Part shown: positions 1,897 to 54,386 of the stretch, piece by piece
Layout: every line of letters starts with the position of its first letter
Position numbering within the stretch: position 1 is the stretch's first letter
NCBI RefSeq assembly: GCF_006345805.1
Contig: NC_043006.1
Span: 74,834,001-74,897,910 of the forward strand
Source: Octopus sinensis
Taxonomy: Eukaryota
Length of the DNA stretch: 63,910 nucleotides
Reading direction: 5' to 3'
Made by a program: the position numbers and the translations under genes
Notes under the pieces: model-generated
Database searches by the model: none
What the model was told of the DNA's origin: nothing
Seen by the model: the letters and a program-made list of their open reading frames with translations, nothing else

Positions 1897-1935
<39 letters not shown>

Positions 1936-2220
1936 ACATTTTCAATTTTACACAAAAAAATTACATAGTCGCTTTCCTCGCGGATTTACAGATAAATGAA
2001 TTAATTACTATTTTACAGAATAAAATTAATGAATTAATTATATAAATTAAATAATTCTTGAAAATTAATTAATATTAATAATATTTTTTGAACAAAGTAA
2101 ATAATTTATAAAACTTGGTTAATAATTTTTTTTACACAAACGCGAACGTATATAATTTGTGAAACTTTTTTTTTTTTACAGACGTATATAATTTGGTAAA
2201 CTTAATGAATTAATTTCTTC

Positions 2221-3687: not shown

Positions 3688-4107
3688 AAAGACCTGTTGA
3701 GGCAAGCGAAGTTGATATCGAACCTCATCCCACGACAGGCACCCACGCCAACCCCCTTTGCTTGCGAAGACATGTTGGGGCAAGTGTGGCACCCGGCAAA
3801 TGCCAGGACCCCTGGACTGGTGGTACGTAAAAAGCACTATCCGAATCGTGGCCGATGCCAGAGCCGCCTCGACTGGCACCAATCCGACCGTGGCCGTTGC
3901 CAGCCTCTCCTGGCACCTGTGCGGGTGGCATGTAAAAAGCACCCACTACACTCTCGGAGTGGTTGGCGTTAGGAAGGGCATCCAGCTGTAGAAACATTGC
4001 CAGATAAGACTGGAGTCTGGTGCAGCCTTCTGGCTTCCCAGATCCCCGGTCGAACCGTCCAACCCATGCTGGCATGGAGAACGGACGTTAAACGATGATG
4101 ATGATGA
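3688..4107 (+). mobile_element. Mirror copy of the same retroposon in the right foldback arm
   Basis: Reverse complement of 2221-2640; the four ORF-track translations are identical between the arms. Confidence 0.6.
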
Positions 4108-5436
4108 GAAGAAATTAATTCATTAAGTTTACCAAATTATATACGTCTGTAAAAAAAAAAAAAGTTTCACAAATTATATACGTTCGCGTTTGTGTAAAAA
4201 AAATTATTAACCAAGTTTTATAAATTATTTACTTTGTTCAAAAAATATTATTAATATTAATTAATTTTCAAGAATTATTTAATTTATATAATTAATTCAT
4301 TAATTTTATTCTGTAAAATAGTAATTAATTCATTTATCTGTAAATCCGCGAGGAAAGCGACTATGTAATTTTTTGTGTGTAAAATTGAAAATGTTATATA
4401 TACACACACACACACACACATATTTTTAGTGAAATCCAACACCTTTTTTGGGGGGGGGGGGTTTAACGCGCATGCGCGAATTCTGCACTGCGCATGCGCA
4501 AGTCACCTCGTAGGATCTCGAGTATCGAGTACCTACGTCTGGTGCGCGCGCGCGCGCGAATTCGCGTGTGAGAAACCGGGACCACGACAATAGACAAGTA
4601 CCGTAACTCTCTAAACATGTCTACGATGAGTCAACGATTTAAAAAAAATTACTATAATTTTTTTTTCCATTTTTAATGCATTTTTTTGCTATTTTTGGCT
4701 ATAACTCTCTAAAAATGCTTATATAGTTATTTCCCTTACAAACCCGAGCAACGCCGGGCGATACTGCTAGTATATATATAAATTAGAGAAAAACTACTAT
4801 TATGTAATTCAAACAATGATAGACATAAACCAAGTCATAAAGAAAAAATAAAATATATTATAAAACATTTAACTAGATCACAAAAAGTACCAAAACAATA
4901 AATAAACAATATATAAGTAAAAGGACGAGCAAATTGATCTGACAGCACAATAATATGCTGAACATAGAAGGTACGATTAACTTGCATGCATCGTTGGAAC
5001 TAATTAATAATTCAGCTGAAGATTACAATAAATCAACACATTTGGTGAATCACCACACATTGCCTCGTAGAGTTTATGTGTTGATGGACAGCAGTTAACC
5101 GCCTTCGACGGTATTATCCTGTCTAATTGCTTATTTTTTAATCATATCTTCTATCTTTTACTCGTTTCACTCATTGGTCTGCGGCCATATTGGGGCACCA
5201 GTCTGGATGCTTTTTTTTTTTCGGATAAATCATCTCCATTATTTATTTTAGTACTTATTGTATTGGTTTCTTATGTCGAACCTCTCTGCTACGGGGACGG
5301 AAATAAACCAACACCAGTTAGTTGTGAAACAGTGGTGCTGGTGGTAAGGACAAACACAAAGACACAGGTGTATGTACGCTATGATAGATCGTTAGCCACT
5401 ACATACTTTTTTTTCTCTCCTTGTTTTTTCGATGTC

Positions 5437-24623: not shown

Positions 24624-25958
24624 CTATTTTCGCGTCTTTTTATTAAGTTTTGGAAATATTAACTTCCGCTTTTGAATCACACCTTGTGATTGCTCAACAG
24701 TTTTTGAATCCATTGGTTCTTGTTCTTCCTGTTTAAGTGAGGCGCTCCACCGAGGAGAATTGTCACCGGAAGAATCTTTTATTCTTTTAATCATATTTGA
24801 TGGATCTTGGGAAGAAAAACTTCCTTTAACAGGATGGTGCGATTTACTTTGCATTTTGAGATTACGTTGGGGCGATTTGGAACGAATCGATTCATCTTCG
24901 TCAGAACTCCACAGAACAGGACCAGGAAGATTGTCAAAAGTTTTTGTTAATTCTAACACTTGAGGGAGATCCTCTTTAACAGAATCATTATCATGAAGAC
25001 TTCGATTATATCCCGACAACAAGAATCTAGAGACAGAATGTAATGGAGTAACGGGTTCCTCAGATATCTGAGATTCAGTAGTACCAGATTCTTCCAAATT
25101 TTTCGAAGACGGCACAGTTTGCTTTTTATTATTTCCTTCTGATGTCGAGTTTTTAACAGCTGAGCTTTCATTTTTAATGTGTTTTTGCTTTTCCGTTTTA
25201 TTATTATCATCTTTATCGAGTGATTTCATCTTTTTAACTTTATTCTCAATACTTGCTCCATTTTTCTTTTTGTTGCTAGATTTTGTATTTATAGGTTTCC
25301 TATTGATGGCCTTTTGGCTTGTGGAATTCGAGCTGTTAACTTTCGAATTTTCAGTAGTTGTATCATTCTTTGCTGTATTCTTGCAAATGCTGCTTTTTTC
25401 ACAATACAAAACAACCAAGCGGTAAAATTGAAGCAAAATGACGAGAGTGTTTTTAGAAGTAAAGAATATATTGGTGTAGCTTAAGACGTTGTATCGAAAT
25501 ATTAGTAACATACGTAGCACAAGGAATGGTCCATCCTGTAAGATAATAGTTGTCAAGATTGATATAATGTCTGCAGTACAGCAACAACAACACAAGCCCT
25601 TGTTAGTCTTATTTGAATTAGTTTCTTCTAAGTTTTCTACCTTTTCTTTAACATAGAGTGGGCGTGGACGGCGCGCTTTCGATGTGGTGACCACAAATGT
25701 AAATTGCAGCAAACTGGCCGTCCAAAGGGAGAGAATAACGATGGTCAAGGTCCAGTTGTATTTGACCACTTCTTCTTTGAATGCTTCGAATAGTTCAATT
25801 ATATCAGCTGCCATACCAATATAGACCAGTAGCAATTGGGAAAGCTGTTCTCTTGAGATCTTTCCTTTCGGTAGCAGCCAACGGCCAATAATAAGCAGGA
25901 GGAGAAGCACTTGCTGAAGAATTCGCACCCACTTTTCTGGATCCAACATAATTTTGAA
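24624..25958 (-). CDS. TMEM26: Terminal coding exon of a TMEM26-like multipass membrane protein (444 aa plus stop)
   Basis: Translation has LLLLIIGRWLLPKG, QLSQLLLVYIGMAADIIE and QDGPFLVLRMLLIF..NIFFTSKNTLVILLQFYRLVVL, matching TMEM26 family motifs as I recall them. Acceptor TTTTCAG|TTC at 25959/25958 (phase 0); stop TAG at 24626-24624. The ORF-track N-terminal poly-I/V/Y/H is intronic microsatellite. Confidence 0.93.
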   Translation of the reverse strand, partial: FKIMLDPEKWVRILQQVLLLLLIIGRWLLPKGKISREQLSQLLLVYIGMAADIIELFEAFKEEVVKYNWTLTIVILSLWTASLLQFTFVVTTSKARRPRPLYVKEKVENLEETNSNKTNKGLCCCCCTADIISILTTIILQDGPFLVLRMLLIFRYNVLSYTNIFFTSKNTLVILLQFYRLVVLYCEKSSICKNTAKNDTTTENSKVNSSNSTSQKAINRKPINTKSSNKKKNGASIENKVKKMKSLDKDDNNKTEKQKHIKNESSAVKNSTSEGNNKKQTVPSSKNLEESGTTESQISEEPVTPLHSVSRFLLSGYNRSLHDNDSVKEDLPQVLELTKTFDNLPGPVLWSSDEDESIRSKSPQRNLKMQSKSHHPVKGSFSSQDPSNMIKRIKDSSGDNSPRWSASLKQEEQEPMDSKTVEQSQGVIQKRKLIFPKLNKKTRK

Positions 25959-25961
25959 CTG

Positions 25962-26130
<169 letters not shown>

Positions 26131-26133
<3 letters not shown>

Positions 26134-26667
26134 TTGGGAACTCTGTGGAAATTACGGCCTACAAAGAGCAAAGACGTGGTATCAGCAAACCCCAGGAGTC
26201 ACCGAAAATGAGAATTGCAAAATCCTGTTGGATGCAATGATCCAGTGCGATCACCTGACCAGACATCGGAAACTGGATATTGTTGTGGTGAATAAAAAAA
26301 AGAAAGAACATAGCATGCCCCGGTGACGACAGGATAAATGTGAAAGAAGAAGCGAAAATAAATAACTATGATGATTTGAAGTGGGGAAATACGAAGGTTG
26401 TGATCAGTGAAGAGAGAAGACATGATAACAATAGTAATTGGTGCACTTGGAAGTATCATCACTCAACTACCAACATGGCTGAAAAAGACTGGTGCAAATG
26501 TGAAGTTAGAACACCTACAAAAAAAATCAACATTGCTTAGAACTGCAAGAATTCTTCGCGGGGTTCTTGAAGCATGACCAGTAAACAAATGTCACCTTAG
26601 TCTGCCTGCTGTGGACAGCTGACACTTTCCATCATACCCAGCAAAATAAGCTGTGAATTTTCAACAG

Positions 26668-26708
<41 letters not shown>
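26131..26708 (+). mobile_element. 5'-truncated Dong/R4-clade LINE 3' end (restriction-like endonuclease) with (ATA)n tail
   Basis: Reconstructed WELCGNYGL..ENENCKILLD..RKLDIVVV..KINNYDDLK..IVIGALG..STLLRTARILRGVLEA*; embedded in trinucleotide microsatellites. Confidence 0.8.
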
Positions 26709-26709
<1 letters not shown>

Positions 26710-26719
26710 TCCTTTTTAA

Positions 26720-27900
26720 CCAATGCTCAAAGCCAGATTGGACTCGAAAATAGTATGTTGTAAAACGTTGGAATAGGAAGTCAATCGGCTATCTTTTGCA
26801 CATGGACGACCTCGTGTTATACATCGCAGATGATAAACAACTAGATATACTGCTACAGACAGTACATTGATTTACTCAAGGAACTGATAAGTGCTTCTCC
26901 AAGTGGAAAAATGCGCTAATGTAATCTTGTAGAAGGGAAAATTAAGTACATTAAATTTCATACTAGAAATAGACTCTGTGATAAGATAATTACAATAAAC
27001 ACAGAGTTACAAGCACTTAGGAATCAATGAACTGGGCAAACGAAAGAAAAAGTTAGGAAGAATATTATAGATTTATCAAATAAATACTCAGAACAGAACT
27101 AAATACAGACGGTAAGATAATCGGATTCAAATATCCTAGTTATTATTATAATATTCTTAACGCCGCCAAGTAAGTTAACATTTATATACAAGTAAATTAA
27201 AACACATACAATGGGATATAATAAGTGTATTCAGAAAACACCACTCAAAATATAATGCAGAAAGATTCTATTTTTCCCTGAATACAAGATGGTAAGGTCC
27301 TTATGCGACTAGAGAACTATTGTGGGATTACGAAAATATCTAGTAAATAAACGAAATAGAACAAGAAAACTAATACAAGGAATTGAATAAATATAAAACA
27401 AAAACTGAAATGATAGATTGTTTTGAAGGAAAGGGAAAAAGATAAAACTGACATTAAAGGCTGCCATTCGAAAATGATGGTAAAATGTTCGTTTGAGATC
27501 AAAAAATGGTAAAACAAAATAAGAGAGATAAATCGACAAAGAAACATTGTAGCATTGGTTGAGAAGCATAGACTCAAAGCTGAAATTGAAGGACTCCTAG
27601 CTGCAACATATGAGCGAAATCTACTTGCCAGAAATCACCAAAAGGCGCTTATTAAAGCAGAGTATGTTAACTAAATGGAGAATAGATGTGGAGGTCAAGT
27701 AGAAACACTTGGCCGAATTATCTCTGCTCAGTCTTAGTCACGAGAGAAGACATCTGCACTCACTCAAATTATGACGGACAGAAACGAATGGTATTTCGAA
27801 GCCTTCTGACGAAAACATCACCAGGAAGGTTGTCGAGAAGTTGTAAAATTAGATGGATCTTGAACCAGAAATAAGCAAAACCTGTGGTATGAGAGTGAAA
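26720..27900 (+). mobile_element. Highly decayed LINE RT fragment, probably Dong/R4
   Basis: LHMDDLVLYIADDKQLDILLQTV (YMDD-type motif) near 26795-26865; many stops downstream. Confidence 0.6.
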
Positions 27901-28561
27901 TCAGTACTAACATCCAAAATGTACCAGAACCAAAATAAATCGATCCTTTTTCTAAATTTAAGTCGCTGATTACAATGACCATACTCGTTTCTTTTAAGAT
28001 TTGCTAAAGTTTTTGAATTACAGAAACTATCCCCTTTTTCGATTTCTCCTCAAGAGCATGTCAAAATGATCCTTCCATAAAATGAGACCATTTGCTGTGC
28101 CTGAAAATGAATGTGTCAATTCTTATAGACCCTTAGTTACAAATCACGGAAATGATACTAATTTTTTTCAAAATTCCTTAATGTTTTGGAAAATCAGGAT
28201 TAAAACCCATCTGAATTTCTTCAAAATCTATAGAAGAGGCATAATGCAGTAAAGATCAAAAACGAATGTGACATACGAGCACAATCATCTTCTTCCAAGA
28301 TTCAATGCTGTACACATTTAAAGAACACGGAGGTGCAACAGAGAATGCAACAGAAACTAATATAAAAACTGTTAAAACTTGAAGATGATACGGAAAATAA
28401 AGGCAGCGCATCGGCCGAAAGCGTTGGTTAAAATGCCTCCGGCTTTCTATGCGCCCTGAATTCAAATCCCATCATGGTCAACTTTGCTTTTTATCTTTTT
28501 GGGGTCGTTTGGAGGAGCACCAATCCTAGGAGGTAGATTAGCAGAACTGTGAGAACGGCGA

Positions 28562-28865
28562 CTGTGGAGGCGCAATGGCCCAGTGGTTAGGGCAGCGGAC
28601 TCGCGGTCGGAGAATCGCGGTTTTGAATCCCAGACCGGGCGTTGTGTGTATTTATTGAGCGAAAACACCTAAAAACTCCACGATGCTCCGGCAGGGGGGG
28701 GGTGACCCCTGTTGTACTCTTTCGCCCCAACTTTCTCTCACTCTTTCTACCTGTTTCTTGAGTAACGCTGCGATGGACTGGCGTCCCGTCCAGCTGGGGA
28801 GAACACAGAAACCGGGAAACCGGGCCCCTGAGCCTGGCTAGGCTTGAAAAAGGGCGAAAAGAAAA
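28562..28865 (+). mobile_element. Family A-related SINE (same head, different 3' body); similar copies at ~6715-7027(-), 17905-18200(+), 33805-33995(+)
   Basis: Shared tRNA-like head and CAACTTTCTCTCACTCTTTC block. Confidence 0.8.
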
Positions 28866-28916
28866 GAAGAACGTCGACCGGATGCCTTGCGGTATTTGTT
28901 CCGGCTCTTGTATCTT

Positions 28917-29198
28917 AATAATGCTGGGATTGTTACCTTAGCCATTCTGCTGGGCCATACTGGCTCCTACATATTGTTCGTGATGCTTTTATTTCTGCCC
29001 TACATTGCCTTTGTCTACTTGGGACTGCATTATTCCAAATGGTATTTTCTACCTCTCTTAACCGTGTTTGAATCCTTTAAATTGGAGAGATATTTTCGTT
29101 ACCGTCACTTGGAACAATTGCCTCGGAAAGTGGCACGGTTGAATTTTATTTTTGGGCTTCTTTATGTTATAGCTTGTATATTGGCACTAAAACACTGA
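28917..29198 (+). pseudogene. UBIAD1: C-terminal ~93 codons of a UBIAD1/Heix-like UbiA prenyltransferase; 5'-truncated fragment (retrocopy, duplicated fragment or orphaned last exon)
   Basis: [58 protein letters not shown] aligns without gaps to the human UBIAD1 C-terminus as I recall it ([58 protein letters not shown]). Stop TGA 29196-29198. No AG acceptor immediately upstream; the 5' flank is SINE sequence. Confidence 0.85.
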
Positions 29199-31390
29199 CC
29201 AAACATTCGCAGCAAGATCCATCGAAAGGCAAAGTATTTATTATTGTTATTTTTATACTTGTTTTTATTATTGTTTTTTGTTATTGATGGAGAAACAGAT
29301 TTGGTAAAGCCTTGCAGTATTCATAGCGTGTTTTTCAGCCTTTCGCGATCGATAAAATGAAGTACCAGTCAGATACTGGGGTCGATTTTGTACTGTGCCA
29401 CTCTGCCATGTGAGGTCCTGTGGGTGAATTGTGTTGAGAAGGCGAAATCAGTAAAGCGGCCGACAAAATTCTTGCGGTATTTCATGTTCCTTTACGTCGA
29501 GGACAAATACTGACAGGGTTTCCGTTTTTGTATCAATAAAATAAACACCTGTAATTACTAGTTACGATATAATCAGGTACATCGATTATACTCTCACCAA
29601 TAGTTGAAATAATAGTTATTAGTGAGACTTTAGAGTGGTTGAAACGGAATGCTAGGTTAACAGGTTCCCTTATGTTCTGAGTTAAAATCATATTGAAATA
29701 AGGACTTGTCACATACTAGTACCGGTTTCATCGAATAAACCTTTCTACTGTAATTTGTGGCCTTCTATCAATTATGATAGTGTAGTCGTATCCTTGTTTA
29801 TGATGTCTTCAGAATAATTAAAATGCTTCAAAATTTCAAATCAAATTACGCGACTGTTCCACCTGCTAGAAATGGTAGTCATATCACACCCTACGAAGGC
29901 TGAGGAACCATGTCTGAGTAATAGACAGGATGGTCACAACTTTTATGATTAACGATTTACCTACTCGACACAATAATTCACATCCAAGACTTTATATGTT
30001 GATTGTAGAGTGCGGAATCGATTATATTGATCTCAGTATTTGACTGGTACTTTATTTTATCGATCTGACTTGTAGGACTTTTTGACCAACGATTCGTTCT
30101 CCTTCAATTAAAACTGACTCGGTGCTAAACAACAATAATGACTTCGACCGTTCGTCATGATTAGCATGAATTATCAATATTATTGGCAGAATTGTTGAAG
30201 TGTGGAAGAAATACTTTGCAGTATTTATTCCAGCTCCTTATTTCTGAGTTCAAATCTCTCTAAGGTCAAGTTTATCTTTCATTCCAAGATCGATAAAATA
30301 AAGTATCAATCCAGTAGTAAGGATCGGTTTATTCGACTAACCATCTTCTTTCAAGATTGTTGGCCAAAATCAGAAATCAGTTTTCTTCAGGTGCTGCACA
30401 AATTATTTAGCGCTATTTCCTCCGGCTCTTTATGTCCTGAGATCAAATACTGTCGGAGCCGACTTCGCGTTTCATCCTTTCGAGGTCGATAAGATAAGCA
30501 GCATTTGAGCACCGGGGTCGATGTGAAGATCCTAATCGACCTCGCTCACCCCTCAAAAAATTCATTTATTTTCAAGACAATATTCTCAGTTGAGATAACT
30601 AATCTTGGTGCTTTACGTTTTCTTCTTTCTTCCTCTCATCTTCTTTAGTTCGCGATCTTTTGTTTCGTGTTCAAACAATCTTTACCACATCCATAATCTT
30701 GATACAAACTAATGTTTCAAGTTCTAGGCTGTAGTTATTGCACAAGGGCATATCTTCTTAAGAAGGTAATTGGTTATATGATTTCTCCACCCAGCTGATA
30801 TTTTATATAACCACGAATAACACGGGGCATTACTAATTAGTTAATTATATATTTACCACGAGTTAGTTTATGACGATAGACATACACCTGAGAGATACAT
30901 ATGTCAAGTTTTAATACCCCTATTTTTTTTTTTGTTTTTCACAGTTGCTAATTTTGTTTTGTAAATGACATGTGCTGTTTTCTGAATTATTCTAGTGTGT
31001 TTACAAAAATGCCTCTGTAGCAGATTTTTGCCTCAACTATCGGGGACGGGAGGAAGTCTTTCTAAAATCTGAGTCCCTCTGAATCTACTGAGGCCCTTTT
31101 AAGTTTTAGGGCATCTACATTTAGTCGGGCCCTCTCTGCTATTTTATGTTCTAAGTTAGCAAAACCGTAGCCCCCCCCCCCGGAAAATGGCCTCGATGTC
31201 CCATCAGACCTATTCCAGCCCTACTTACGAAGATCCCTAGCAACTCTTTCCTAAGTTGTACTTCACTGTGTCGCCTGAAATGTTTTTCATCACGTTTGCT
31301 CCATAACCTGTGGCTGAAGAAAAATAACAAATAATACGGCAAGTACAGCATCATCAATGATTCTTACGCTGATTACACGAGTCTCCAAGT

Positions 31391-31680
31391 CAGGGGTCGG
31401 GGAACTTTTTTGGTAACCAATTACACCAAAATATATTTATTTACTCCGACTTTATCCCCCTTAATTTGAAAAGAAGAAAATCGCAGATTCTTTGAATTCA
31501 AAAGGTTTATTGAAAGAACTCGTTTTCTATGTAATTTTACTTACGTCTAATGAGTCCTCATTACCCCTAAGAATTTTATTCTTACCCCACTTCGGGTAAT
31601 TTATCCCGGTTCACCTGCCCTAAGCGGGTGCGTGATCTTTTAGAAATAGTTAGAATTTTCCCTAAAACCACAACCTGCCG
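31391..31680 (+). mobile_element. hAT-like non-autonomous element; second copy at ~61835-62070
   Basis: CAGGGGTCGGGGAACTTTTT start; internal block TCTAATGA(G/A)TCCTCATTAC...TACCCCACTT.GGGTAATTTA is shared with 61990-62055. Confidence 0.5.
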
Positions 31681-32395
31681 TATTAAAAGAGAATGGTCAC
31701 AGTGTATAATAATGTATGTATGCATACACACTCCTGGTCTAATTTAGTCTCTTTTAATATGGTATACGCACACTTAAGCACGGTCGAATAGTTATGAAGT
31801 GTGCTCCATCGACTTTGTTTCGTCAAAAGTTCCAGAAAAGTACTTTTTAGTGAAATTTTCTCCAACTATCTTTCATGTGGTGTAGATTGTGATTCTATTG
31901 GAATTTGTTGTGAAAAGGTGTTTTCGGGGGTGGGGGGGAGTTTCGGGTAATTCCACAATGTTGGATTTGTTTCCTCGTTACTTTATGGAAAATTAATATT
32001 TTTGTGATAACACTAGTGCCAAACTAGATTAATGGTTTTTCTCTGGGAAAAATATCAATGGAGTAAAGACAGAAGATTTGCATGCATGGTTATGCTTGTT
32101 TAAATCAAAAAATTTTGCCCATGTGGTCACATATACGTATGGATGTATAGTCAGTATTAATCGACAGGGATCCTACAATAAGGATTATAAAAAAGGATGA
32201 TAAGGATTTCTGACTTTACACAAAGCCACATATTTGTAAGGAAGTGATGTGGGCGATAAACCAACCCCAACATTTAACTGGTATTACTTCGTCAAACTTG
32301 CTAATTGAGAAGTAAAGTATCGCATTCTGAAGGTCCTATAGCGTACCATCCCAAAATAAAAATCTTATTTTATTTTAGACACACACACAGAGACA

Positions 32396-32434
<39 letters not shown>

Positions 32435-32447
32435 CACACACACACAC

Positions 32448-32504
<57 letters not shown>

Positions 32505-32524
32505 CACACACACACACACGCACG

Positions 32525-32561
<37 letters not shown>

Positions 32562-32756
32562 ACACACACATACACGCACTCACACACACATATATGCGCA
32601 GGCGTGGCTGTGTGGTAAGAAATTTGTTTCCCAGCCACATGGTTCGGGTTCAGTTCCACTGCGTGACACATTGGAGTGAGTGTCTTCTACTGTAGCTTCG
32701 GGCCGACTAAAGCCATGCGAGTGGATTTGGTAGACAGAAACTGGAAGAAGCGCGTC

Positions 32757-32823
<67 letters not shown>

Positions 32824-33174
32824 TGTGTCTTTGTTTCTTTGTCCTGCACCACCGCTTGAAAAACCGGTGTTGGTGTGTTTACATTCCCATAACATAACGG
32901 TTCGATAAAAGGCGACTGATAGAATAACTATCAGGCTTTAAAAAGTCCTGGGGTTGATTCGTTCGACTAAAAACTATTCAAGGCGGTGCCCCAGCATGGC
33001 TGCAGTCTAATGATTGAAATACGTTTAACATGACAGATTAAAGATATATGATAAGACCTGTACGTAGCTGTCCTTGTTGGTGTCCAGTGCATTCTATGCT
33101 TTAATTAGATGAAATATAATTCTATGCAGCCAGAGTAACACCGGTGCGAAATAAATTGAAGGTTGTTGGCAATT

Positions 33175-33568
33175 CTTTTTTTTTTAAGCACTCCGTCGGT
33201 TACGACGACGAGAGTTCCGGTTGATCCGAATCAACGGAACAGCCTGCTCGTGAAATTAACGTGTAAGTGGCTGGGCACTCCACAGACACGTGTACCCTTA
33301 ACGTAGTTCTCGGGGATATTCAGCGTGACACAGAGAGTGACAAGGCCGGCCCTTTGAAATACAGGTACAACAGAAACAGGAAGTAAGAGTGAGAGAAAGT
33401 TGTGGTGAAAGAGTACAGCAGGGATCACCACCATCCCCTGCCGGAGCCTCGTGGAGCTTTAGGCGTTTTCGCTCAATAAACACTCACAACGTCCGGCCTG
33501 GGAATCGAAACCGCGATCCTATGACCGCGAGTCCGCTGCCCTAACCACTGGGCCATTGCGCCTCCACA
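33175..33568 (-). mobile_element. Full-length family A SINE with poly(A) tail
   Basis: Near-identical to 20728-21115; TSD TGTTGGCAATT at 33164-33174 and 33569-33579. Confidence 0.9.
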
Positions 33569-35084
33569 TGTTGGCAATTAATAAGATATGGTTCATGCGT
33601 TTTGATTCAAGATTCATTAGGTTTCAGCGCCAGTTCATAATATAAAGAAGAAAACGTGCAACAAAGCGAATACCCGTCTTCAGGCATCTACCATACTCTG
33701 AACGTCTTGCTTCCTTGGGTATGGACAGGTTGAAGCTCAGACGTCTGGTAACTGTCTTGGTAGACACCCACAAGATTATCCACCATCTTTCCAACAACAA
33801 CCGTGGTGGAGGTGCAATGGCCCAGTGGTTAGGGCAGCGGACTCGCAGTCGTAAGAACGCGGTTTCGATTCCCAGACCGCGCATTGTGAGTGTTTATTGA
33901 GCAAAAACACCTAAGCTCCACAAGGCTCCGGCGGGGTGGTGGTGAACCCCGCTGTACTCTTTCACCACAACTTTCTCTCACTGTTTCTTCATATTTCTGC
34001 CACAAAGCAGAGGAACCATGGTGTAACCCACTATGGTGTGGTAAACTTTCAGATCCTATTCTAGATTACATCGACCCCAGTGCGTAACTGGCACTTAATT
34101 TATCGACCCTGAAAGGATGAAAGGCAAAGTCGACCTCGGCGGAATTTGAACCTTGTTACATTCTGTGTCACGCTGAACTTTCCCGAGAACTACGTTAACG
34201 GTACATGTGTCTGTGGAATGCTCAGTCACTTGCACGTTAATTTCACGAGCAGGCTCTTCGGTTGATCGGATCATCTGGGACCCTCGTCATTGTAGCCGAC
34301 GGAGTGTCAGCAAAATGTGTGTGTGTGGCCGAAAGGTCAACAAGTTAACTTCGATCTCTCTCTCCTTAAGTGGAATCTTGTGACCCACATTTGTGAGCGA
34401 AAAAATTAGGTAGATGGAAAATGCATTGAAGCCCATCGGGTGGATTATACCCGTAATTAAAGAGGTACAGTCTTATCATGCACTATGTCACTCGCAGACA
34501 TATCTGCCTAAAGAATACTAAGTCTCAGGAAATTTAGTCGATCGAACAAGTGAATACTTATCGTCGACCGAAACGGAGATCCACCGCACACACGCGCTCG
34601 CCTAATTGCGTGCGTATGAGTGCACGCGCGCGCGTGGGTGCGTGCGTGTGTGTATGTGTGTAAGTGTGTTCGTATGTTCATATGTATGTTTGTATGTAAA
34701 CTGTCTGAAAGATAGATTATTATCAGATACAGATAAAATTCTACAATTCTACTGTTCATTTACTCTTCCTCTTTTACCATTTCCAGTTAACGAGGCTGAA
34801 CAGCTATGCTAATGCAGCGCCATCTGTTGAAAATATTATCTCATCATCTAATTTCTGTGTTTGTATCACGTGTCCTAAACCCACACAGCGAACTAAAGAT
34901 GTACTATTTATAGGAATATTATTTATTTGTTAGTTGCAGGCATCGGTTAAGAAGCTCGATTTACAACCACGTGATTTCAAGTTCAGTGTCACTGCGCGGC
35001 ACCTTGAGCAAATGTCATCTAGTATAGCTCCAGGACGACCAATTCCTCGTGAGCGAATTTGGTAGATAGAAACTGAGTTTTAAG

Positions 35085-35500
35085 GCGGCGAGCTGGCAGA
35101 AACGTGAGCAAGCGGGGCGATAATGCTTAGCGGTATTTCACCTGTCGCAAGGCTGTGAGTTCAAATTCCGCCGAGGTTGACTTTGCCTTTCATCCTTTCG
35201 GGGTCGATAAATAAAGTACCAGCTACGTACTGGGGTCGATATAATCGACTTAATCCATTTGTCTGTCCTTGTCTGTCCTCTCTGTGTTTAGCCCCTTGTG
35301 GGTAGTAAAGAAATAGGTATTTCGTCTGCCGCTACGTTCAGAGTTCAAATTCCTCCGAGGTCGACTTTGCCTTTCACCCTTTCGGGGTCGATAAATTAAG
35401 TACCAGTTACGCACTGGGGTCGATGTAATCGACTTAATCCCTTTGTCTGTCCTTGTTTGTCCCCTCTATGTTTAGCCCCTTGTGGGCAATAAAGAAATAA
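35085..35500 (+). mobile_element. Dimeric family B SINE; similar copies at 7810-8205(-), 15040-15425(-), 62340-62722(-); monomers at 60320-60552(-), 63205-63432(+)
   Basis: Same head, core and CCCCTTGTGGG.AGTAAAGAAATA tail units. Confidence 0.85.
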
Positions 35501-36059
35501 GAAACTGAGTGGAAGCCCATAGATTCACCCCACACACACACACAAATGTTATATATTCACGGTCAACTATAACTAACCCCATTCACCCGTTGTAACCCCA
35601 AACTTATCCGACCTCCTGTCAGTGTACCAATGTACAAATAGCCAGAACAACATGCCAAGGAGATCTCAGTACATCTTATGGGGTATCTTTTTTCTACACC
35701 AAGCATCTGAAGTGACACAGGCTGCACTGATTCATGCAACACATTGTGAGGGTTGTGAGTGTTTATTGAGCAAGAAACACCTAAGAGGAACCATGGTGTA
35801 AGTAAACCACTATGGTGTGGTAAACTTTCAGACCCTAATCTAGATTGTGAATCCTCGGTACCTCAGGATGGTTCAGCTCTCCACCCGTTAAAAACTCACC
35901 GTTTACAGAATGAGGACAACAACGTAGCTTTCGCGCCCGTGCAACCGCCAGTCTATCGCGTGTGGTGGGTGGATCTTCAAGTTGGCACACGCATTCTTTG
36001 TGGCTTAGAGTAGGCTCGAATTAGAGATTATTCTTTGTGGCTAATGGCGTGAGTCCTGA

Positions 36060-36238
36060 TTGAAGAAGAAGAAGAGAAGAAGAAAGAAGAAGAAGAAGAA
36101 AGAAGAAGAAGAAGAAGAAGAGAAGAAGAAGAAAGAAGAAGAAGAAGAAGAAGAAGAAGAAGAAGAAGAAGAAGAAGAAGAAGAAGAAGAAGAAGAAGAA
36201 GAAGAAGAAGATGATGATGATGATGATGATGATGATGC
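36060..36238. repeat. (GAA)n-(GAT)n microsatellite
   Basis: Seen directly; source of the poly-E/K/F/S ORFs. Confidence 0.95.
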
Positions 36239-36762
36239 AGCACAACAGGATGCACAATATTCTACCTCTAAGGGACAGATGCAGGATGGGTCGAAAAGAT
36301 TGTCGTGATGAACAAAGATTCGTATTGAATCCATCTTCCGTTTCCTTTATCAACTGCTCACACACACACATACACACACACACAGACACAGCCACACACA
36401 CACGCATGTACGCGCATACACACACTCGCACACACACATGTATGTGTGTGAGTCTGTATATGAACGTTTGTGTTTGTTCTCCTACCCTACCGCTTGACAA
36501 GCATTGTTGGCTTGTTTACGTACCCGCAACTTAGCGGTTCAGTGAAAGAGAGCGGTAGAGTAAGTACCGAATTTTAAAAAAGAAAAATAAGAACTGGGAT
36601 CAATTTTCTCTATTAAACCCTTTAAGACTGTGCTCCAGCATGGCCTTAGATCAATGACTGTAACGAGAAACGGATAAAGGATAGAAGGCTAAGTATTAGT
36701 TTTAAAAATAAAGACAAGGAAACAAGAAATATTTTTAATGTTTAAATAACGAAGGAGGATAC

Positions 36763-43824: not shown

Positions 43825-44779
<955 letters not shown>

Positions 44780-45016
44780 ATATATCTGTGTGTCTGTGTT
44801 TGTCCCCACCCCAACATCGCTTGACAACCGATGCTGGTGTGTTTACATCCCCGTAATTTAGCGGTTGGCAAAAGAGACCGATAGAATAAATACTAGGTTT
44901 ACAAAGAGTAAGTTCTGGGGTCGATTTACTCGACTAAAGGTGGTGATCCAGCATGGCCACAGTCAAATGACTGAAACAAGTAAAAGAATACAGACATATA
45001 TACACACACATACATA

Positions 45017-45812
45017 CAGGGTGCGATGGGTAAATAGTCGCAACTGTATGTTTTTAATTTCGCGCATGCGCTTTATTTGTCTTTGACTTTGTCGACTACA
45101 CAGTATGGTAAGGTCAGTTGGACACCATCTGAGAGAAAAACAATACCAGGACTCAATTTACTCTGCCAAAAATTTGGAAACAAGGTACTGTGCTACTTGG
45201 CAGTATCGCCGGAACCTCCAATACGAATATTTCATAGTGTTTGGATGTCAATCTGAGGACACTGCAATCTGAGGACATGTACCGAGAGTTATAGAAATAG
45301 AACATCCAGTCAACATCATGGTGTTTGGAGTGATCACTAGTGATGGCAACGTTATGCCTCCATTCATCTTCCCACACGGTTTCAGACTAAACATGGAGGC
45401 CTACATCAAGTGCCTGGAGGACGTAGTGCTGCCCTGCGTCAAGAGGATGGCTGCTTGAAGACCCTATGTCTGACAACAGGACTCTGTACCATACCACACC
45501 AGCAGGAGAACCCAATCATGGCTGTCAGACAATTTCTGCGACCACATTACCCCTAACATCTGGCCACCTAACTCCCCAGACTGCAACCCCTTCGATTATT
45601 ATGTGCGGGGTGCAGTTGGGCGAGGGACTAACTTAAACAAGGAGACCGTCCAGAAGAGTTGCAGGAGATTCCGAAGTCGTCTAGAGACCGTGGTTGAAGC
45701 CAATGGGGATTTTACTGAATATGTAATTTTGGTAAATATATCTGTAAAGTGAGATGGCAGTGTTATTTTCGTTTTTCCGTAACTTAGACGACACTTGATT
45801 CACCGCAACTTG
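45017..45812 (+). mobile_element. Deleted maT/DD37D (Tc1-mariner superfamily) transposon remnant
   Basis: TA|CAGGGTG left end. Translation QQDSVPYHTSRRTQSWLSDNFCDHITPNIWPPNSPDCNPFDYY has 37 residues between the second and third Asp. The right end is degenerate and approximate. Confidence 0.75.
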
Positions 45813-46092
45813 TTTGTATGTATGTATGTATGTATGTATGTATGTATGTATGTATGTATGTATGTATGTATGTAGCAAGACGGCTAAATCGTTACCATGC
45901 CGATCAAAATGCTTAACAGCATGCCGAGGGTGACTTTGCCCTTCATTCTTTGAGTCGATAAATTAAGTACCAGTGAAACACTGCGTCGATGTAGTCGATT
46001 AGTCCTCTACCCCGAAATTTCAGGCCTTGTGCCTTTAGTAGAAAGGCTCTCTCTCTCTCTCTCTCTCTCTCTACTCTCTCTATCTATCTATC

Positions 46093-46146
<54 letters not shown>

Positions 46147-46309
46147 GAACTATCCATCTCTCTTTCTCTCTTTCTATATAATAATAATAATAAAAATGAT
46201 GATAATAATAATAATAATAACAACAACAACAACAATAATAATAATAGGGAATATGATTCCAAACTTACAGGAAAAAAATCAATTTAGTAATACTAAATCA
46301 AATTTCACA

Positions 46310-46615
46310 ATACATAATACATGTATATAAATTAGAGAAGAACCACCATGTAGCAATTCAACAATGATATACTTAAATCATACCATATAGAAAAAAATTA
46401 AAGACACGATAAAACATTTACCTAGAACTATATAAAGTACGAAATAATATATTATATATAAATACTTATATATACTATTTATTTATTATTTCGTATGTTA
46501 TTTAGTTCTAGGTAAATGTTTTATCGTATCTTTAATTTTTGCTATATGGTATGATTTAAGTATATCATTGTTGAATTGCAACATAGTGGTTCTTCTGTAA
46601 TTTATATGCATGTAT

Positions 46616-46625
<10 letters not shown>
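46310..46625. repeat. AT-rich palindrome (~140-bp arms); arm homologous to 4775-4910
   Basis: GCAATTCAACAATGATATACTTAAATCATACCATATAG pairs with CTATATGGTATGATTTAAGTATATCATTGTTGAATTGC. Confidence 0.85.
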
Positions 46626-46646
<21 letters not shown>

Positions 46647-47336
46647 ATATATATATTATATATTATATATATATAATATATATATATAATATATATATAT
46701 ATATGTAAATAGTAATGCAATACGAGAGTATTGCTTTCCAGTAAAGTACTTCGTTGTGCCATATATTTACTTATATATATATATATTATATATATATATA
46801 TATAATATATACATACGAAGGACGATAAACTAAATACTATACAAGACTAAGTCTTGCTTTATTGAATTTATCCTTGCGTCGAGAGAGGATAAACAACCAA
46901 CTAGCGACATTTGTGACCGAATCCCAATGTAAAGGGAAAACCTCAAAGAAATAACAATTCCCTCTCTCTCCTCCACTCTCTCTGCCCCCCTTTCTCTTCC
47001 CTTCTCTTATATGTGTGTGTGTGCGTGCGTGCGCGCGTACGTGGTTGTGTGTGTGCCACTCTAATTAATAAGTCACAGTATAAATAATGGCGAAACTTTC
47101 TAATAGGAATGAAATAGTGCTATACAGCATTGCCACTTAACAAGAAATTTCAAATGTGTGAACTTTGTCTTCCTAGTCTTCGTTGATTTCTCATTTAAAC
47201 TTCTATCTCCGTTTCGTGTTGCGAGGAGATGGTTATCTCCCTGGTATCACCGGTTATAGGCAGAGGGAGCCACACGCATACATACATATATACATATATA
47301 CAAATATACATACGCATGTATGTATGCGTATATATA

Positions 47337-47383
<47 letters not shown>

Positions 47384-47559
47384 ATACATACATATCTGTG
47401 TGTGTCTGTCTGTCTGCGTGTATTTGTTGGATGCGCAACTGGACAAGTCTTCAATATTTGTTGCAGAGTTTTCTTTATTCGTTCGATGTCGATGCTTCGT
47501 TCCGTCACTGCTTCGAATATGAAATCCCATGCGAGGTCATCTGAAGGACAGTAGTACGA

Positions 47560-47637
47560 GATTAAGACACATCGAATACCTGCAGTGACTCACTAGCTTC
47601 GGACGAATACACACACACACACACACACACACATACA

Positions 47638-47677
<40 letters not shown>

Positions 47678-48090
47678 ACGCTCGCGCGCACACACACACA
47701 CACACACATACATACATACATACATATATACAGACAGACATACGCACATACGTACGTACATACATACGCACACACATATATGTATATATATATCTATGAA
47801 TGTATATATGCGTGTATTAGTGTGTGTGTAACTGTATGTGTGAGGGATGGTTGTACATGTGTGCATGCGTTCCTGCGTGTTTGTATATAGCTGTATATAT
47901 ATATATATACATACATATGTATGCATAGATGCTTGTATACATGTGTTTATATATGTGTGCATACACACTCACATACACAAATACATACATATATACGCAT
48001 ACACAAACACAAAACACACATACACAAACATTCACACGCACACACACACACATTCAAGCTTCAAGCACACACGCACTCACATACAAACGT
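47560..48090. repeat. Long (CA)n/(TACA)n/(TG)n low-complexity block; one of many di- and tetranucleotide tracts (e.g. 11885-12115, 32385-32595, 49085-49375, 57275-57545)
   Basis: Seen directly. Confidence 0.9.
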
Positions 48091-49377
48091 GTGATTGCCT
48101 GCAGATGTAACAATAGAGAGACATAACAATTCATTGGCATTATCATATTTAAACAAATTTCTTTGTTAAAATCCTGACTATTTTGAATAATTTATGCAAC
48201 TGAACTTTTAGCTAAAGATTTTTTTAAAAAAACAACCAGCATAAGATTTCTATTGTTTAATTCTCAGTTCAGATCTTATCCAATAAACCTCTGATCAAAG
48301 GCATTCCATCCTCAACGTCCCTATTTTTGTCTTAAAATAATTTCAGAAAATGACGTAGCTAATATCACTTGCCACGGTTATCTTTCATTTTGTAAAATGC
48401 CAGGGAGATATCTGCCTGTTGTACAAGCAGATCGCCCTGTTTCTCCAACATTATAAAAGGAAGGTGCATGCGCTTTGCAGAACATTGCTGGCGAGTTGAA
48501 CAAGAGCTGACGAGTGACCTACTTCTATCGACGCAAAAGCGTGGCAGTACGTGAGCTGATCGTCTGAATACAACGCATATAGATCAGCTCATCTGAGACG
48601 CTTGATGTCTACCAGGAGACCTCTCGTAGCTAATACAGGACCGCGAACGATGGTGGTCATGTGCGTGTTAAAAATGTCCAAGCAAGCTCGACCAGATGCA
48701 CGAGTATCGCAGTTTATACAGCGGCATTGTTAACAATGAAATTTGAGGAAACAACCAAAGCGTTTTTCCTTGAACTTCTTATCTAAATAAATATAAAAGT
48801 TATTTTGATGGTGGATTCACTTTCATAATGATTTCTTTTACAACAGGTCCGCACGCGCAGACACACACATACATACACACGCATACATACACACACATAT
48901 AAACATACATATGGATACACACACATATAATGTGGAAACAATGTGCAGGAGATCAACGCTAACTTCACAATGCATACATACGTACGTGCAGACAAACATA
49001 CATGTATACATATATACAAACATACAAATATGCATCTACATAATACATACATACAAACTAGTATAATATCTATATAGTATACACAATCCAATTATACATA
49101 TATATGTATCTATATATATATATTAGATATATATTATATAATATATATTATTATATATATATATATATATATAATGTATATATTATATATATATATATAT
49201 GATATGCTATATATTATATATATATATTATATGTATATATAATATATATTATATATTATATATATATATATGTATATATATAATATATATATATATGTAT
49301 ATATATTATATATAATATTATATATATATAATATATAGATATATATATATATATAATATATATATAATATATATATG

Positions 49378-49702
49378 GATGGAAACACTCCGTCGGTTAC
49401 GACGACGAGGGTCCGGTTGATCCGAATCAACAGAACAGCCTGCTCGTGAAATTAACGTGTAAGTAGCTGAGCACTCCACAGACACGTGACCCTAACGTAG
49501 TTCTCGGGGATATTCAGCGTGATACAGAGAGTGACAAGGCCGGCCCTTTGAAATACAGGTACAACAGAAACAGAAGTAAGAGTGAGAGAAAGTTGTGGTG
49601 AAAGAGTACAGCAGGAATCACCACCATCCCCTGCCGGAGCCTCGTGGAGCTTTAGGTGTTTTCGCTCAATAAACACTCACAACGCCCGGTCTGGGAATCG
49701 AA
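49378..49702 (-). mobile_element. Family A SINE with the head cut off by the (TA)n/Penelope junction
   Basis: Body matches the 20728 and 33175 copies and stops at GGGAATCGAAA. Confidence 0.85.
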
Positions 49703-49704
49703 AA

Positions 49705-51620
49705 TATATATATATATAGAAAATAGTAAAAAGTGAAAAAACTACCGAAGGCTTGTTTTAAAAGGTTAAAAAATATATATTTGAGTCATTATGTCTGAAG
49801 AATGTTATAAATTTTTTTTCATACAATGACATAGGTTTTTGAAGAAATGACCGTTTTCGCGTTCGCTTTTCAAATTTCTTACATCGTTATGTTTTCGTTG
49901 AGAAGTGTAAAGAAGAGTTCCAGATAAGGGGAGGTAATAAGTGATTTCTTCCGGTGTAAGGAGATAATCGCTTAATATTTCTTGCCTTTTTTTTTGGGTG
50001 AGTTTCTCTGTATAAGAATGTTGGAATGTTAAGTTTGGGCTTGTTTTTTCAATGAAGAATGTTTCCTTGTTTAGTCTAATTTGTGTGGTGTTCCGATAGC
50101 ACATTGGTAAATGGAAAGATTAAAAATTGTGGTAGTATTTGCTTGCGCATTTCTCAATGTGGCTCACTAAAGGGTATCATTCTGTATTCTGGGAATGCAA
50201 TCTGTTGTCGATGCAGTGTGCATCTACGTCTGAGTGATAGTCCCGTGGACCCCCACGTAGTTTTGGTGGCAGCCTGAGCATCTTATGACATAAATTATGT
50301 TTTCAGAGGCACAAGTAAAATTAGATTTGATCTTGAAATTCTGTCCCCTCTTTGAAGAGGAATTCTGATCCTTCTAGAAGGTTTGGACATGTTGCACAGT
50401 TCGGTCTACCACATTTTTTAACTTTTGCATCCGTAATTTCAGAAAACAATTTTGGCCTTTGTGAGAATCTTTTTAGGTTGTTGTAGTCTTTTATGATTTG
50501 GTGTATGTTTAGAATTTCCTTTAATTTGGGGTCCTTATGAAGTATTGGTAAATTCTGGGTGATGATGGTGAAGGCTTCTTGTTTCTGGGGTTGTATGTGG
50601 ATATGTAAGGTAGTATTTTCGGGGATGGTGTGTTGTTGTGTTGAACTTTTCTCAAAGTTTCTATGTTGATTTCTGTTGCACGTCTGATCCCATCCTCTAT
50701 GAGTTGAGCTGGGTAATGTCTGTCAATTAGGGTGTTTTTGAGTTCTTGCAGTCTAAAGTTCCTGGTATTTTGTTCTGACACTATTGTGCATATCCTTCTT
50801 GCAAGGTTGAAGGGGATGTTTGTTTTAGTGTGTCTTGGGTGGCATGAATCAAAAAGTAGGTATTGTTTGGCGTCTGTGGCTTTGTAAAAATGTCTGTTTT
50901 CTATTTTAAGGTTAATTTTTAAATTAGTATATCCAAGAATGGGAGCTACTTTTGGTTATTCCATTGTGAACTGTATATTTGGGTTTATGCTGTTCAATAG
51001 GTTTTTGAATTTTAGGAGTTTATCTGTGTTTTTCATTCCAGAGTATAAAAAATCGTCCAGGAATCGTTTCCAATTCTCTTTTATGTATTGAGAGGAGGGG
51101 GTTACCAAAGATTGATAAAGATTCCTGGTAAATGATTATTTCCAGAGTAGCCCATTGTTAGGTTCGCAATGACTGGTGCTGCCCTTGTACCCATAGCAAT
51201 TCCGGATTTTTGACGGTAAAATGTATTGTCAACATGAAGTGGTTATATGTAGGATGAATTCAATTGATTTTAGTAATGAATTCTTTACTGATCCCTTTTG
51301 TATTTCTTCCGGAAATTGGTCCAGCCAGAACTGTATTGGCCTCTAGTCCATAATTACGAGTATACTGGTATATAAGTTAACTACATCAAATGAAACCATG
51401 ATGTTTCTTCTTTGGCTTTTTTTGGAAGGTGGTTTAACATATCTAAGTCATCTCTGATATGGCTATCGATATTTTAAGGAAGGGTTTCAGGAGGATGTCC
51501 ATAATAGACTTAGTCTGTGTGTTTCACAGGTTGGGCCAGCTACAAAGGGTCGTAGTTTTAGGTCCCCCGGGTTAGGTGTGTGTATGTATGTCTTTGGTGA
51601 TTTTTTGAATGGTTTCATTT
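49705..51620 (-). mobile_element. Decayed Penelope-like retroelement (RT plus GIY-YIG-side ORF remnants)
   Basis: Minus-strand translations FYRQKSGIAMGTRAAPVIANLTMG, WKRFLDDF and RLQELKNTLIDRHYPAQLIEDGI..ILPYISTYNPRN are typical of the Penelope RT and linker. Frameshifted; (TA)n on both sides. Confidence 0.85.
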
Positions 51621-51699
51621 ATATATATTATATATATATATATATCTATATATATATATATATTATATATATAATAATATATATATTATAAAATACAGA

Positions 51700-52800
51700 T
51701 TAAGTGCAGGGCATCATCGACCAGCAAAAAAACACGTAAATACACGAGACATAAGTAGAAGACAAAATACCAAAAATACCACAAAATTACACAAAGGACA
51801 TCAACAGCAAGTGGAAAATACGTAAACAAATAACGAGAAACAAGTACCGGACAAAATACCGAAACAAGTCTAACTCCTCCTCAGTTGTCGACGATTTACT
51901 AATCCCTATTTCGACAGGAAAATTTCATAAGACAGCAGCATCCAGACATTTTTTAAATATAAAATTTGTGGATAGTTAGGGCTTCGAACGAACAAACAGT
52001 AACAGAGTGGACGTAAAGAGTAAACACCAAGGCAAACGTTAAGGGCCGTTGTCCTGTACTTAATCTATACTTTTTAAATTTATTTATAACCGAACGCCAC
52101 GCAGCCTTGTCCACAGTAAGTTCTTACATTTATCTATAATTTCTGTGACACCACACTCTGTTTTCTTTCTTTCTCGTTATCCCTCTATAATCCTCTTTAT
52201 TTTCCGTTTCTCCCCTCATTATTTGCTGTCCCCTGTCTTTCTTCCACTCCCAACTATCTTTCGTTCCTTCTCCCTTCTCCTCACTCCCTTTGTTTCATTT
52301 CATCCTCTCTCTCGTCCCCCTTCCCCTCTACCTGCTTGCTCACACGTGACTACAGGCAGTTCTCTCACCTCTGCACTTTTTGGACTTGGCCTTCGTTTAG
52401 CTGGACGTCATTTTCTCGCCTCCCCGACATTTTTTCTCTTCTACTTATTTTATACCTTTTCAAAGTTTCTCCCAGACGTTGCCCATTACCATTCGTCTTA
52501 GCCTGACGGCCCTTAATGTTTGTTTTCATCGATTGTTTACTCTGTACGTCCACTCTGTTGTTGTTTGTTCGTTCGAAGCCCTAACTCTCTACAAATTTTA
52601 TATTTAAAAAAATTCTGGATGCTGTTGGCTTATGACGTTTTTCTATCTTGTCGTTGAAAGCTCGAAATAAGGAGTAAGAAACAGTCGATAACTGAGGAGG
52701 AGTTATACTTCTTTTGGCATTTTGTCCTCTACTTATCTCTCGTGTATTTACGTGTGTTTTTCGCTCGTTGGTGATGTCCTGTACTTACGTGTATCTTATA
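51700..52800. repeat. Inverted repeat pair (~51700-52050 vs ~52505-52800) next to the Penelope ORF; probable inverted pseudo-LTR
   Basis: CTAACTCCTCCTCAGTTGTCGAC pairs with GTCGATAACTGAGGAGGAGTTA; ACGTAAATACACGAGACATAAGTAG pairs with CTACTTATCTCTCGTGTATTTACGT. Confidence 0.7.
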
Positions 52801-52820
52801 TACATATATATAGATATCTA

Positions 52821-52869
<49 letters not shown>

Positions 52870-53141
52870 ATATATTATGTATGTATATTAATATTAGGAA
52901 GATATTTCTGAGTCCACAGAGGAGAGAAGTTCAATTTAGTGGTACTAAAATGAATTACTCACTGTATTATATACATATATAAAGATAGGTTTAAGAGAAT
53001 TGTAGATATTAATTATGATAATTTTAATATTTAGTCCTACATGTACCTATTGTGGATAATGTCATTCAATGATGATTAAGTTGCTCGACGGTGATTCTGT
53101 CTCTTAAACATATCTATCTATCTATCTATCTATCTATCTAC

Positions 53142-53197
<56 letters not shown>

Positions 53198-53200
53198 TTA

Positions 53201-53243
<43 letters not shown>

Positions 53244-53244
53244 G

Positions 53245-53301
<57 letters not shown>

Positions 53302-54386
53302 GTGTGTAAAAGAGAGAGAATGTCATGCTAAAACATTTTAGAGAACAAAAGGAAATATGTAGTCTATGAATATTTCATAAAGTGTCTACGGTACTCGACA
53401 GATGTAACCGAATTGACGACAAGTTTTCTTTGAAAACATGGAGACAAACAACAACAAAAGAAAACAAGAAAAAGAGGAAAAATAAAAAAAAATAGCACGA
53501 AGAATAGACGGCATTATACCAACATGCACACATACTCTCTCAGACACACACAGACACACACATAGATATACATAAATGCAAACATAGATACACGCAAGGC
53601 TACGCACATATAATGTGTATGCACGTTTATTTTACAAACGAAATAAAAAGTACTCAATACATACTGGGGAGCTTAAATATTTAAACACAACTGGCGTTTC
53701 ACTCAGTCGCTACTTAGTGTTCCATTATTCGCATGTGTTTTTTATATACTCTTTTTTACTCTTTTACTTGTTTCAGTCATTTGACTGCGGCCATGCTGGA
53801 GCACCGACTTTAGTCGAGCAACTCGACCCCGGGACTTATTCTTTGTAAGCCCAGTACTTATTCTATCGGTCTATTTTGCCGAACCGCTAAGTGACGGGGA
53901 CGTAAACACACCAGATCGTTGTCAAGCAATGCTAGGGGGGACAGACACAGACCACAAAAACATACACGACACCCATATATATATACACATACATATATAC
54001 GACAGGCTTCTTTCAGTTTCCGTCTACCAAATCCACTCACAAGGCATTGGTTGGCCCGGGGCTGTAGCAGAAGACACTTGCCTAAGATGCCACGCAGTGG
54101 GACTGAACCCGGAACCATGTGGTTGGTAGGCAAGCTACTTACCACACAGCCACTCCTGCGCCTATTCTTTAATTCTAATATTATTTTCGTTATTTCAGTC
54201 ATTTGACTGCGTCCATGCTGGAGCATCGCCTTAAAGGGTTTCCAGTCGAAGAAATCGACGCCGGAACTTATTCTTTGAAAAACCCAGTGCTTATTCTATC
54301 GGTTTCTTTTACCGAAATGCTAAGTTACAGGGACATAAACGCACCAACATCGGTTGTCAAGTGATGGTGGGTGGCAAACACAGACA

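Follow-up and report, generated by a model that had tools for sequence, protein, structure and literature searches.

At full length, UBIAD1 (Heix; PF01040) is a multi-helix membrane protein of ~320–400 aa. The window analyzed here, a 63,910-nucleotide stretch of Octopus sinensis DNA, holds only 91 codons derived from this family. Their translation is colinear and ungapped with the C-terminal ~90 residues of animal UBIAD1 at 47–59% identity, and the best solved relative is PDB chain 8djk_B (‘UbiA prenyltransferase domain-containing protein 1’). The likeness is confined to the last ~27% of the protein; the first ~6 helices and both Asp-rich motifs are missing.

The 91 codons sit at one end of a 3,083-bp block, which can be compared with described kinds of insertion. 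Insertions at double-strand breaks that arise without target-primed reverse transcription (TPRT) are known in human as class 2 ‘templated sequence insertion polymorphisms’, and NUMTs and filler DNA are captured by end joining. Like these, the block looks like a single-copy segment from elsewhere, carries no target-site duplication (TSD) or poly(A), has junction homology of ≤1 nt and left its target intact. The block also resembles a 5′-truncated processed pseudogene in being a truncated copy, without promoter and 5′ part, in the intron of an unrelated gene. LINE-mediated processed pseudogenes, however, have a poly(A) tail and a TSD; the block has neither, whereas a local SINE retro-insertion does have a TSD. 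We favor, at a probability of roughly 0.75, a young, O. sinensis-specific and dead-on-arrival UBIAD1 fragment that came in on an inserted 3,083-bp block of octopus DNA, with capture by end joining as the inferred route.

A UBIAD1 C-terminal fragment antisense to a TMEM26-like gene

A TMEM26-family gene has its last exon in the minus-strand ORF at 24624-26171. A 435-aa query from this ORF is 100% identical to P0211 (569 aa, PF09772), a protein recorded for Octopus vulgaris as well as for Octopus sinensis. Exon mapping with P0211 gives the following framework, in which the UBIAD1 fragment lies antisense to the TMEM26-like gene and inside its intron.

36915-36763, minus strand: TMEM26-like exon, aa 75-125
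25959-36762, minus strand: intron of the TMEM26-like gene (LOC115216257, protein P0211), 10,804 bp, between the exons for aa 75-125 and aa 126-569
25958-24627, minus strand: TMEM26-like last exon, aa 126-569
28923-29198, plus strand: UBIAD1-derived coding remnant, 91 codons and a TGA stop, from profile and protein searches

The plus-strand frame is open from 28848 to 29198 and ends in a TGA stop at 29196-29198; the 91 codons that match UBIAD1 occupy 28923-29195 (AGIVTL...ALKH) with no stop or frameshift. In a phmmer search the fragment matched 8djk_B without gaps at E = 5.8e-21, query residues 12-100 aligning with residues 205-293 of the 301 in the chain. Against 1.84 billion representative sequences, phmmer returned 93 matches (best 2.7e-24), every one of them aligned at its C-terminus and none above 55% identity to the fragment. 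A hidden Markov model (HMM) of seven full-length animal UBIAD1 proteins, run against the six-frame translation of the window, gave the fragment as its single match (E = 2.9e-38, HMM positions 244-333); the same search found no second UBIAD1-like sequence in the window, with nothing else better than E ~1. The Pfam UbiA model (PF01040) gives a weak match (E = 1.4e-3; 18.4 bits, gathering cut-off 34.2) because the fragment covers the tail of the domain only, at model positions 171-232 of 250.

The fragment corresponds to human/hamster UBIAD1 residues ~243-330, which form the last transmembrane helices past the second Asp-rich motif. Its identity to nine bona fide UBIAD1 orthologs is 47-59%, in a set whose members are 34-73% identical among themselves, and all columns invariant in the UBIAD1 alignment are retained within its span. 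As judged from this alignment, the fragment shows no sign of decay relative to the orthologs, which is expected because the copy would be very young.

These results bear out much of what the initial annotation had read from the DNA. The host is indeed a TMEM26 intron of ~10.8 kb on the opposite strand, the sequence is a UBIAD1 C-terminus with no stop or frameshift, and homology to UbiA proteins is present in searches against both 8djk_B and the UBIAD1 profile. N-terminal UBIAD1 exons, described there as missing, are found neither in the window nor in the 69.8-kb O. sinensis locus. The extent had been overstated, as a ‘C-terminal half’ is in fact about 27% of the protein, and the N of ‘NAGIVTL’ is flank sequence and not UBIAD1. 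The homology had also been said to begin abruptly right after SINE sequence. The abrupt start stands; the adjacency does not, as 158 nt lie between the end of the recognizable SINE core, near 28763, and the start of homology.

The fragment begins at the edge of a species-specific block

The TMEM26 locus was compared among three assemblies, L004 (GCA_006345805.1, CM016868.1), L005 (GCA_951406725.2, OX597822.1) and L006 (O. bimaculoides). The window is 100% identical to L004. Since P0211 carries an O. sinensis RefSeq accession, we take L004 to be the O. sinensis assembly and L005 therefore to be O. vulgaris. The comparison delimits a block with two parts, the coding remnant listed above and a longer non-coding remainder.

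28922-32004, no strand: species-specific block, 3,083 bp, 37% GC, carried by the O. sinensis assembly but not by O. vulgaris at the orthologous site
29199-32004, plus strand: non-coding remainder of the block, a putative parental 3′ UTR or downstream DNA, with no ORF carrying a family signal
~29312-29390, 30026-30065 (reverse strand), 30216-30321, 30407-30525 and 31391-31615: old octopus SINE remnants in the block

Up to 28921 the O. vulgaris locus runs colinear with the window at ~98.6% identity, and the alignment picks up again at 32005/32006; placement of the block is ambiguous by 1 nt (alternative 28923-32005). When the O. sinensis flanks are joined and set against the O. vulgaris empty site, the alignment is gap-free over 400 bp and differs at the junction by one C/T. 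In O. vulgaris the empty site reads ...TCTTAATAA-C-GATAACACTAGTGCC... and the O. sinensis filled site reads ...TCTTAATAA[TGCTGGGATTGTT ... AATATTTTTG]TGATAACACTAGTGCC.... No target bases were lost at the block junctions, and the shared T amounts to ≤1 nt. Homology to all UBIAD1 orthologs starts at A-G-I-V-T-L, the first full codon of the block (GCT at 28923).

A tblastn search found no UBIAD1 sequence in the TMEM26 loci of O. vulgaris or O. bimaculoides, and no gene besides TMEM26 is called at the locus in any of the three octopus assemblies. The presence/absence comparison in related species that the initial annotation had proposed is informative here: O. sinensis has the block, O. vulgaris cleanly lacks it, and the O. 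bimaculoides locus has no UBIAD1. The presence of the block is read from one O. sinensis assembly. The O. bimaculoides flanks cannot be aligned at the exact site, so this species gives no outgroup polarity for the indel.

Content and ends of the block

The SINE remnants within the block are diverged, being 74-81% identical to other octopus copies, and their presence identifies the block as octopus DNA and rules out contamination as its origin. AATAAA motifs occur from 29535 onward (the first at 29535/29540). The block extends 2.8 kb beyond the stop codon and ~2.4 kb beyond these first motifs, and its remainder has the appearance of a long UTR rich in repeats or of genomic 3′ flank.

The initial annotation had suggested looking for a poly(A) tail or TSD beyond the coding sequence, and neither turned up. 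No A-run of ≥7 is present in 28922-32040, and the 3′ end reads ...GGAAAATTAATATTTTTG. Comparison of the joined flanks with the O. vulgaris empty site gives no target-site duplication beyond the single ambiguous T. The block has no terminal direct or inverted repeats, and its ends are TGCTGG... and ...TTTTTG. Gene capture of the Helitron type (A/T insertion, 5′-TC, 3′-CTRR, 3′ hairpin) was considered and rejected, as these ends do not fit and there is no terminal hairpin or repeat.

SINEs and other indels near the block

Three further features of the intron bear on the relative timing of events and on the insertion machinery of this lineage.

28566-28763, plus strand: tRNA-derived SINE copy, one of five in the window, common to O. 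vulgaris
33132-33568: O. sinensis-specific tRNA-derived SINE insertion, absent in O. vulgaris, with a ~10-bp TSD (TGTTGGCAAT)
33914-34327: 414 bp in O. sinensis, missing in O. vulgaris, where the copy of the SINE from 33811 is truncated

The SINE at 28566-28763 predates insertion of the block, as it is shared with O. vulgaris. A 40-nt probe was taken from this copy (the one at 28569); of the five copies in the window, three others match it with zero mismatches. The retro-insertion at 33132-33568 is 4 kb from the UBIAD1 fragment, and the tRNA-derived SINE family has been active since the O. sinensis/O. vulgaris split. The truncated SINE in O. vulgaris marks 33914-34327 as a deletion in that species. 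Rfam and tRNA scans of the window returned no matches.

Coding potential

The open frame continues upstream of the block, into sequence that is not derived from UBIAD1.

28848-28921, plus strand: open in-frame segment of intron flank that is ancestral, KRAKRKEERRPDALRYLFRLLYLN, with the same sequence in O. vulgaris; contains TTG 28887

The 24 open codons upstream of AGIVTL are ancestral intron sequence common to O. vulgaris, in frame by chance, and 28886-28909 resembles the head of a common octopus SINE. The only in-frame ATG lies at 28983, with none upstream, and the fragment has no promoter of its own. There is no AG splice acceptor between 28869 and 28940, in agreement with the initial annotation, which had seen none before AGIVTL. 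The AG at 28940-41 was considered as an acceptor, U12-type or otherwise, and rejected, as UBIAD1 homology reaches 18 nt upstream of it.

In all relatives the second Asp-rich motif (NNTRDxxSD) stands directly upstream of AGIVTL (alignment columns 401-411), where the fragment has flank sequence. Both Asp-rich catalytic motifs are absent, the first belonging to the N-terminal part of UBIAD1. By its sequence, the fragment cannot be a prenyltransferase, because the second Asp-rich motif and the whole N-terminal three quarters are missing. The six candidate products of ORFs starting at ATG, GTG or TTG gave no hit in an exact look-up against a 15-billion-protein collection. Runs of TTTT occur in the upstream SINE (28621, in the B-box region) and next at 28987, positions that make Pol III read-through from this SINE into a translatable RNA implausible.

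The parent gene and UBIAD1 in other animals

No near-identical annotated protein for the fragment was found in a word index of 5.8 billion proteins, which includes octopus proteomes; the index may be too insensitive for a query of 92 aa, or the parent may lack annotation. The profile search yielded no cephalopod UBIAD1 among the matches listed (120 of 1,190 UBIAD1 proteins). The closest identity to the fragment among all proteins retrieved is 59%, and a metagenome scan found no relatives above this value. No relevant literature on UBIAD1 in octopus was found.

The UBIAD1 coding region is a single uninterrupted exon in Littorina saxatilis (L001, 2001-3077) and in Lingula anatina (L002/L003, 2001-2963), so intron content may not separate a DNA from an RNA origin of the fragment. 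In Logan contig L037, UBIAD1 is in at least three pieces with short introns, an arrangement that is uninformative on intron positions in cephalopods. In L. anatina L003, UBIAD1 (2001-2963, plus strand) lies head-to-head with an mTOR-like gene (1-1164, minus strand; a 2486-aa product with FAT, FRB and PI3K domains), the same neighborhood as human MTOR-UBIAD1. This mTOR-UBIAD1 neighborhood could guide a search for the octopus parent locus.

Origin of the block

In the mechanism that we favor, a 3,083-bp piece of octopus DNA would have been inserted antisense into the TMEM26-like intron after the O. sinensis/O. vulgaris split. The first 276 nt of the block would be the last 91 codons and stop of a UBIAD1 gene, and the rest its SINE-rich 3′ flank or UTR. 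Capture would have taken place during end-joining repair of a double-strand break, with either a genomic fragment or a non-polyadenylated nucleic-acid copy of the parent locus as the source, and the block would not have arrived by LINE target-primed reverse transcription. The frame would be intact from youth and not from selection. The junctions have the character expected of end joining without TPRT: they are clean, share ≤1 nt, and show neither a TSD nor poly(A) nor terminal repeats. The best-supported mechanism, we infer, is end-joining capture, in which either a DNA fragment or a cDNA without poly(A) would have been taken up.

The block was probably inserted on the branch leading to O. sinensis, and would be younger than the ~1.1-1.4% divergence of its flanks. 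This reading draws on the coincidence of the block edge with the start of UBIAD1 homology, which is automatic under insertion; with O. bimaculoides unalignable at the site, polarity rests on this boundary argument. An older fragment, present in the common ancestor and lost from O. vulgaris by a 3,083-bp deletion, has in its favor the 414-bp O. vulgaris deletion within a SINE nearby (33914-34327) and an outgroup that is uninformative at the site. It is nonetheless very unlikely, as such a deletion would need a left end no more than 1 nt from where UBIAD1 homology begins and would need to restore a seamless site, and the fragment is undecayed. An assembly artefact is an unlikely explanation too, if less so: here the block would belong to the true UBIAD1 locus, and a graph error or a chimeric long read would have placed it in this contig. 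In favor of this, the block is seen in a single O. sinensis assembly, an annotated protein with the C-terminus of the fragment was not found, and a near-perfect 2.8-kb palindrome in the same window (1751-4565) is a possible missed-adapter artefact. Against this, the contig resumes at the exact same nucleotide after 3,083 bp with its flank intact, which would take two precise chimeric junctions, and the left junction falls in coding sequence that is unique, where no repeat could lead an assembler astray.

The route of arrival separates the end-joining reading from a classical LINE-mediated, 5′-truncated retrocopy of UBIAD1 mRNA. Truncation inside the coding sequence is typical of retrocopies, active SINEs imply that reverse-transcriptase machinery is available in the lineage, and the single-exon coding regions of Littorina and Lingula mean that missing introns are no argument against a retrocopy. 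We still regard it as quite improbable: the 3′ end of the block is neither poly(A) nor A-rich, any TSD is ≤1 nt, and the block continues ~2.4 kb past the first AATAAA signals, while the contemporaneous SINE insertion has a ~10-bp TSD. That SINE shows that target-primed reverse transcription leaves its mark in this lineage, a mark that the UBIAD1 block lacks. Of the options in the initial annotation, the ‘young 5′-truncated retrocopy or transduced fragment’ comes closest; the young, truncated copy holds, given the clean absence from O. vulgaris and the lack of decay, and the ‘retro’ part is unsupported, given no A-run of ≥7 and a TSD of ≤1 nt. A functional element is hardly credible, be it a terminal exon belonging to a nested UBIAD1 gene or a hydrophobic micro-protein of ~70-116 residues translated from the frame. 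In its favor, 116 codons are open without interruption and the UBIAD1 segment retains its family-invariant residues; set against these are the absence of the block from the sister species O. vulgaris, the missing AG acceptor (28869-28940), the missing upstream UBIAD1 exons in 28.9 kb of window and in L004, the sole in-frame ATG at 28983, the loss of both Asp-rich motifs, the lack of annotation for the fragment in every assembly and the 0/6 ORF products in the 15-billion-protein collection. The ‘SINE-disrupted exon of a nested gene’ is accordingly refuted by the intact O. vulgaris empty site, by the lack of an acceptor and of any upstream exon, and by TMEM26 being the only gene called; the ‘SINE-driven micro-protein’ starting at TTG 28887 is very unlikely given its ancestral flank codons, the ATG only at 28983, the TTTT runs and the missing Asp-rich motifs. 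It is conceivable, if far-fetched, that the block is the footprint of RNA-templated or otherwise unusual break repair in the cephalopod germ line, and that the chimeric frame (24 flank and 91 UBIAD1 codons) is perhaps transcribed antisense within TMEM26 as an O. sinensis-specific hydrophobic micro-protein or regulatory antisense RNA. The block is an ordinary lineage-specific gene-fragment insertion, and the UBIAD1 sequence on it is almost certainly a non-functional gene fragment and not a nested gene.

Annotation and further observations on the window

For annotation, the sequence is best labeled a UBIAD1 gene fragment or pseudogene, not a gene or nested exon, and it is not to be counted as an O. 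sinensis UBIAD1 paralogue. The locus provides a clean, datable case of genic-DNA insertion without retrotransposition between sister octopus species, and a minor data point on the spread of gene fragments in repeat-rich cephalopod genomes. If fixed, the block could be used as a presence/absence marker for O. sinensis versus O. vulgaris.

The palindrome at 1751-4565 spans ~2.8 kb with its center near 3164; arms of 570 nt and 223 nt match at 100% and others at 97-99%, and identical ORFs occur on both strands (2253-2603, plus; 3725-4075, minus). The palindrome could be a real inverted duplication, or it could stem from an adapter missed in a long read and so be an artefact of the O. sinensis assembly. 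The TMEM26-like gene spans 49.8 kb in O. sinensis as compared to 39.2 kb in O. vulgaris. Its upstream intron contains a large stretch that is non-colinear between the two, with 10.3 kb in O. sinensis (window 43826-54162) against 6.7 kb in O. vulgaris (L005 27653-34329). Low-complexity tracts lie directly upstream of the TMEM26 last exon (window 25960-26171, minus strand) and throughout the window. They include long mononucleotide- and trinucleotide-like tracts, poly-His/Tyr/Ile reading frames and microsatellites of the TA, CA and ATT types, and such tracts are typical of the repeat-rich octopus genome.
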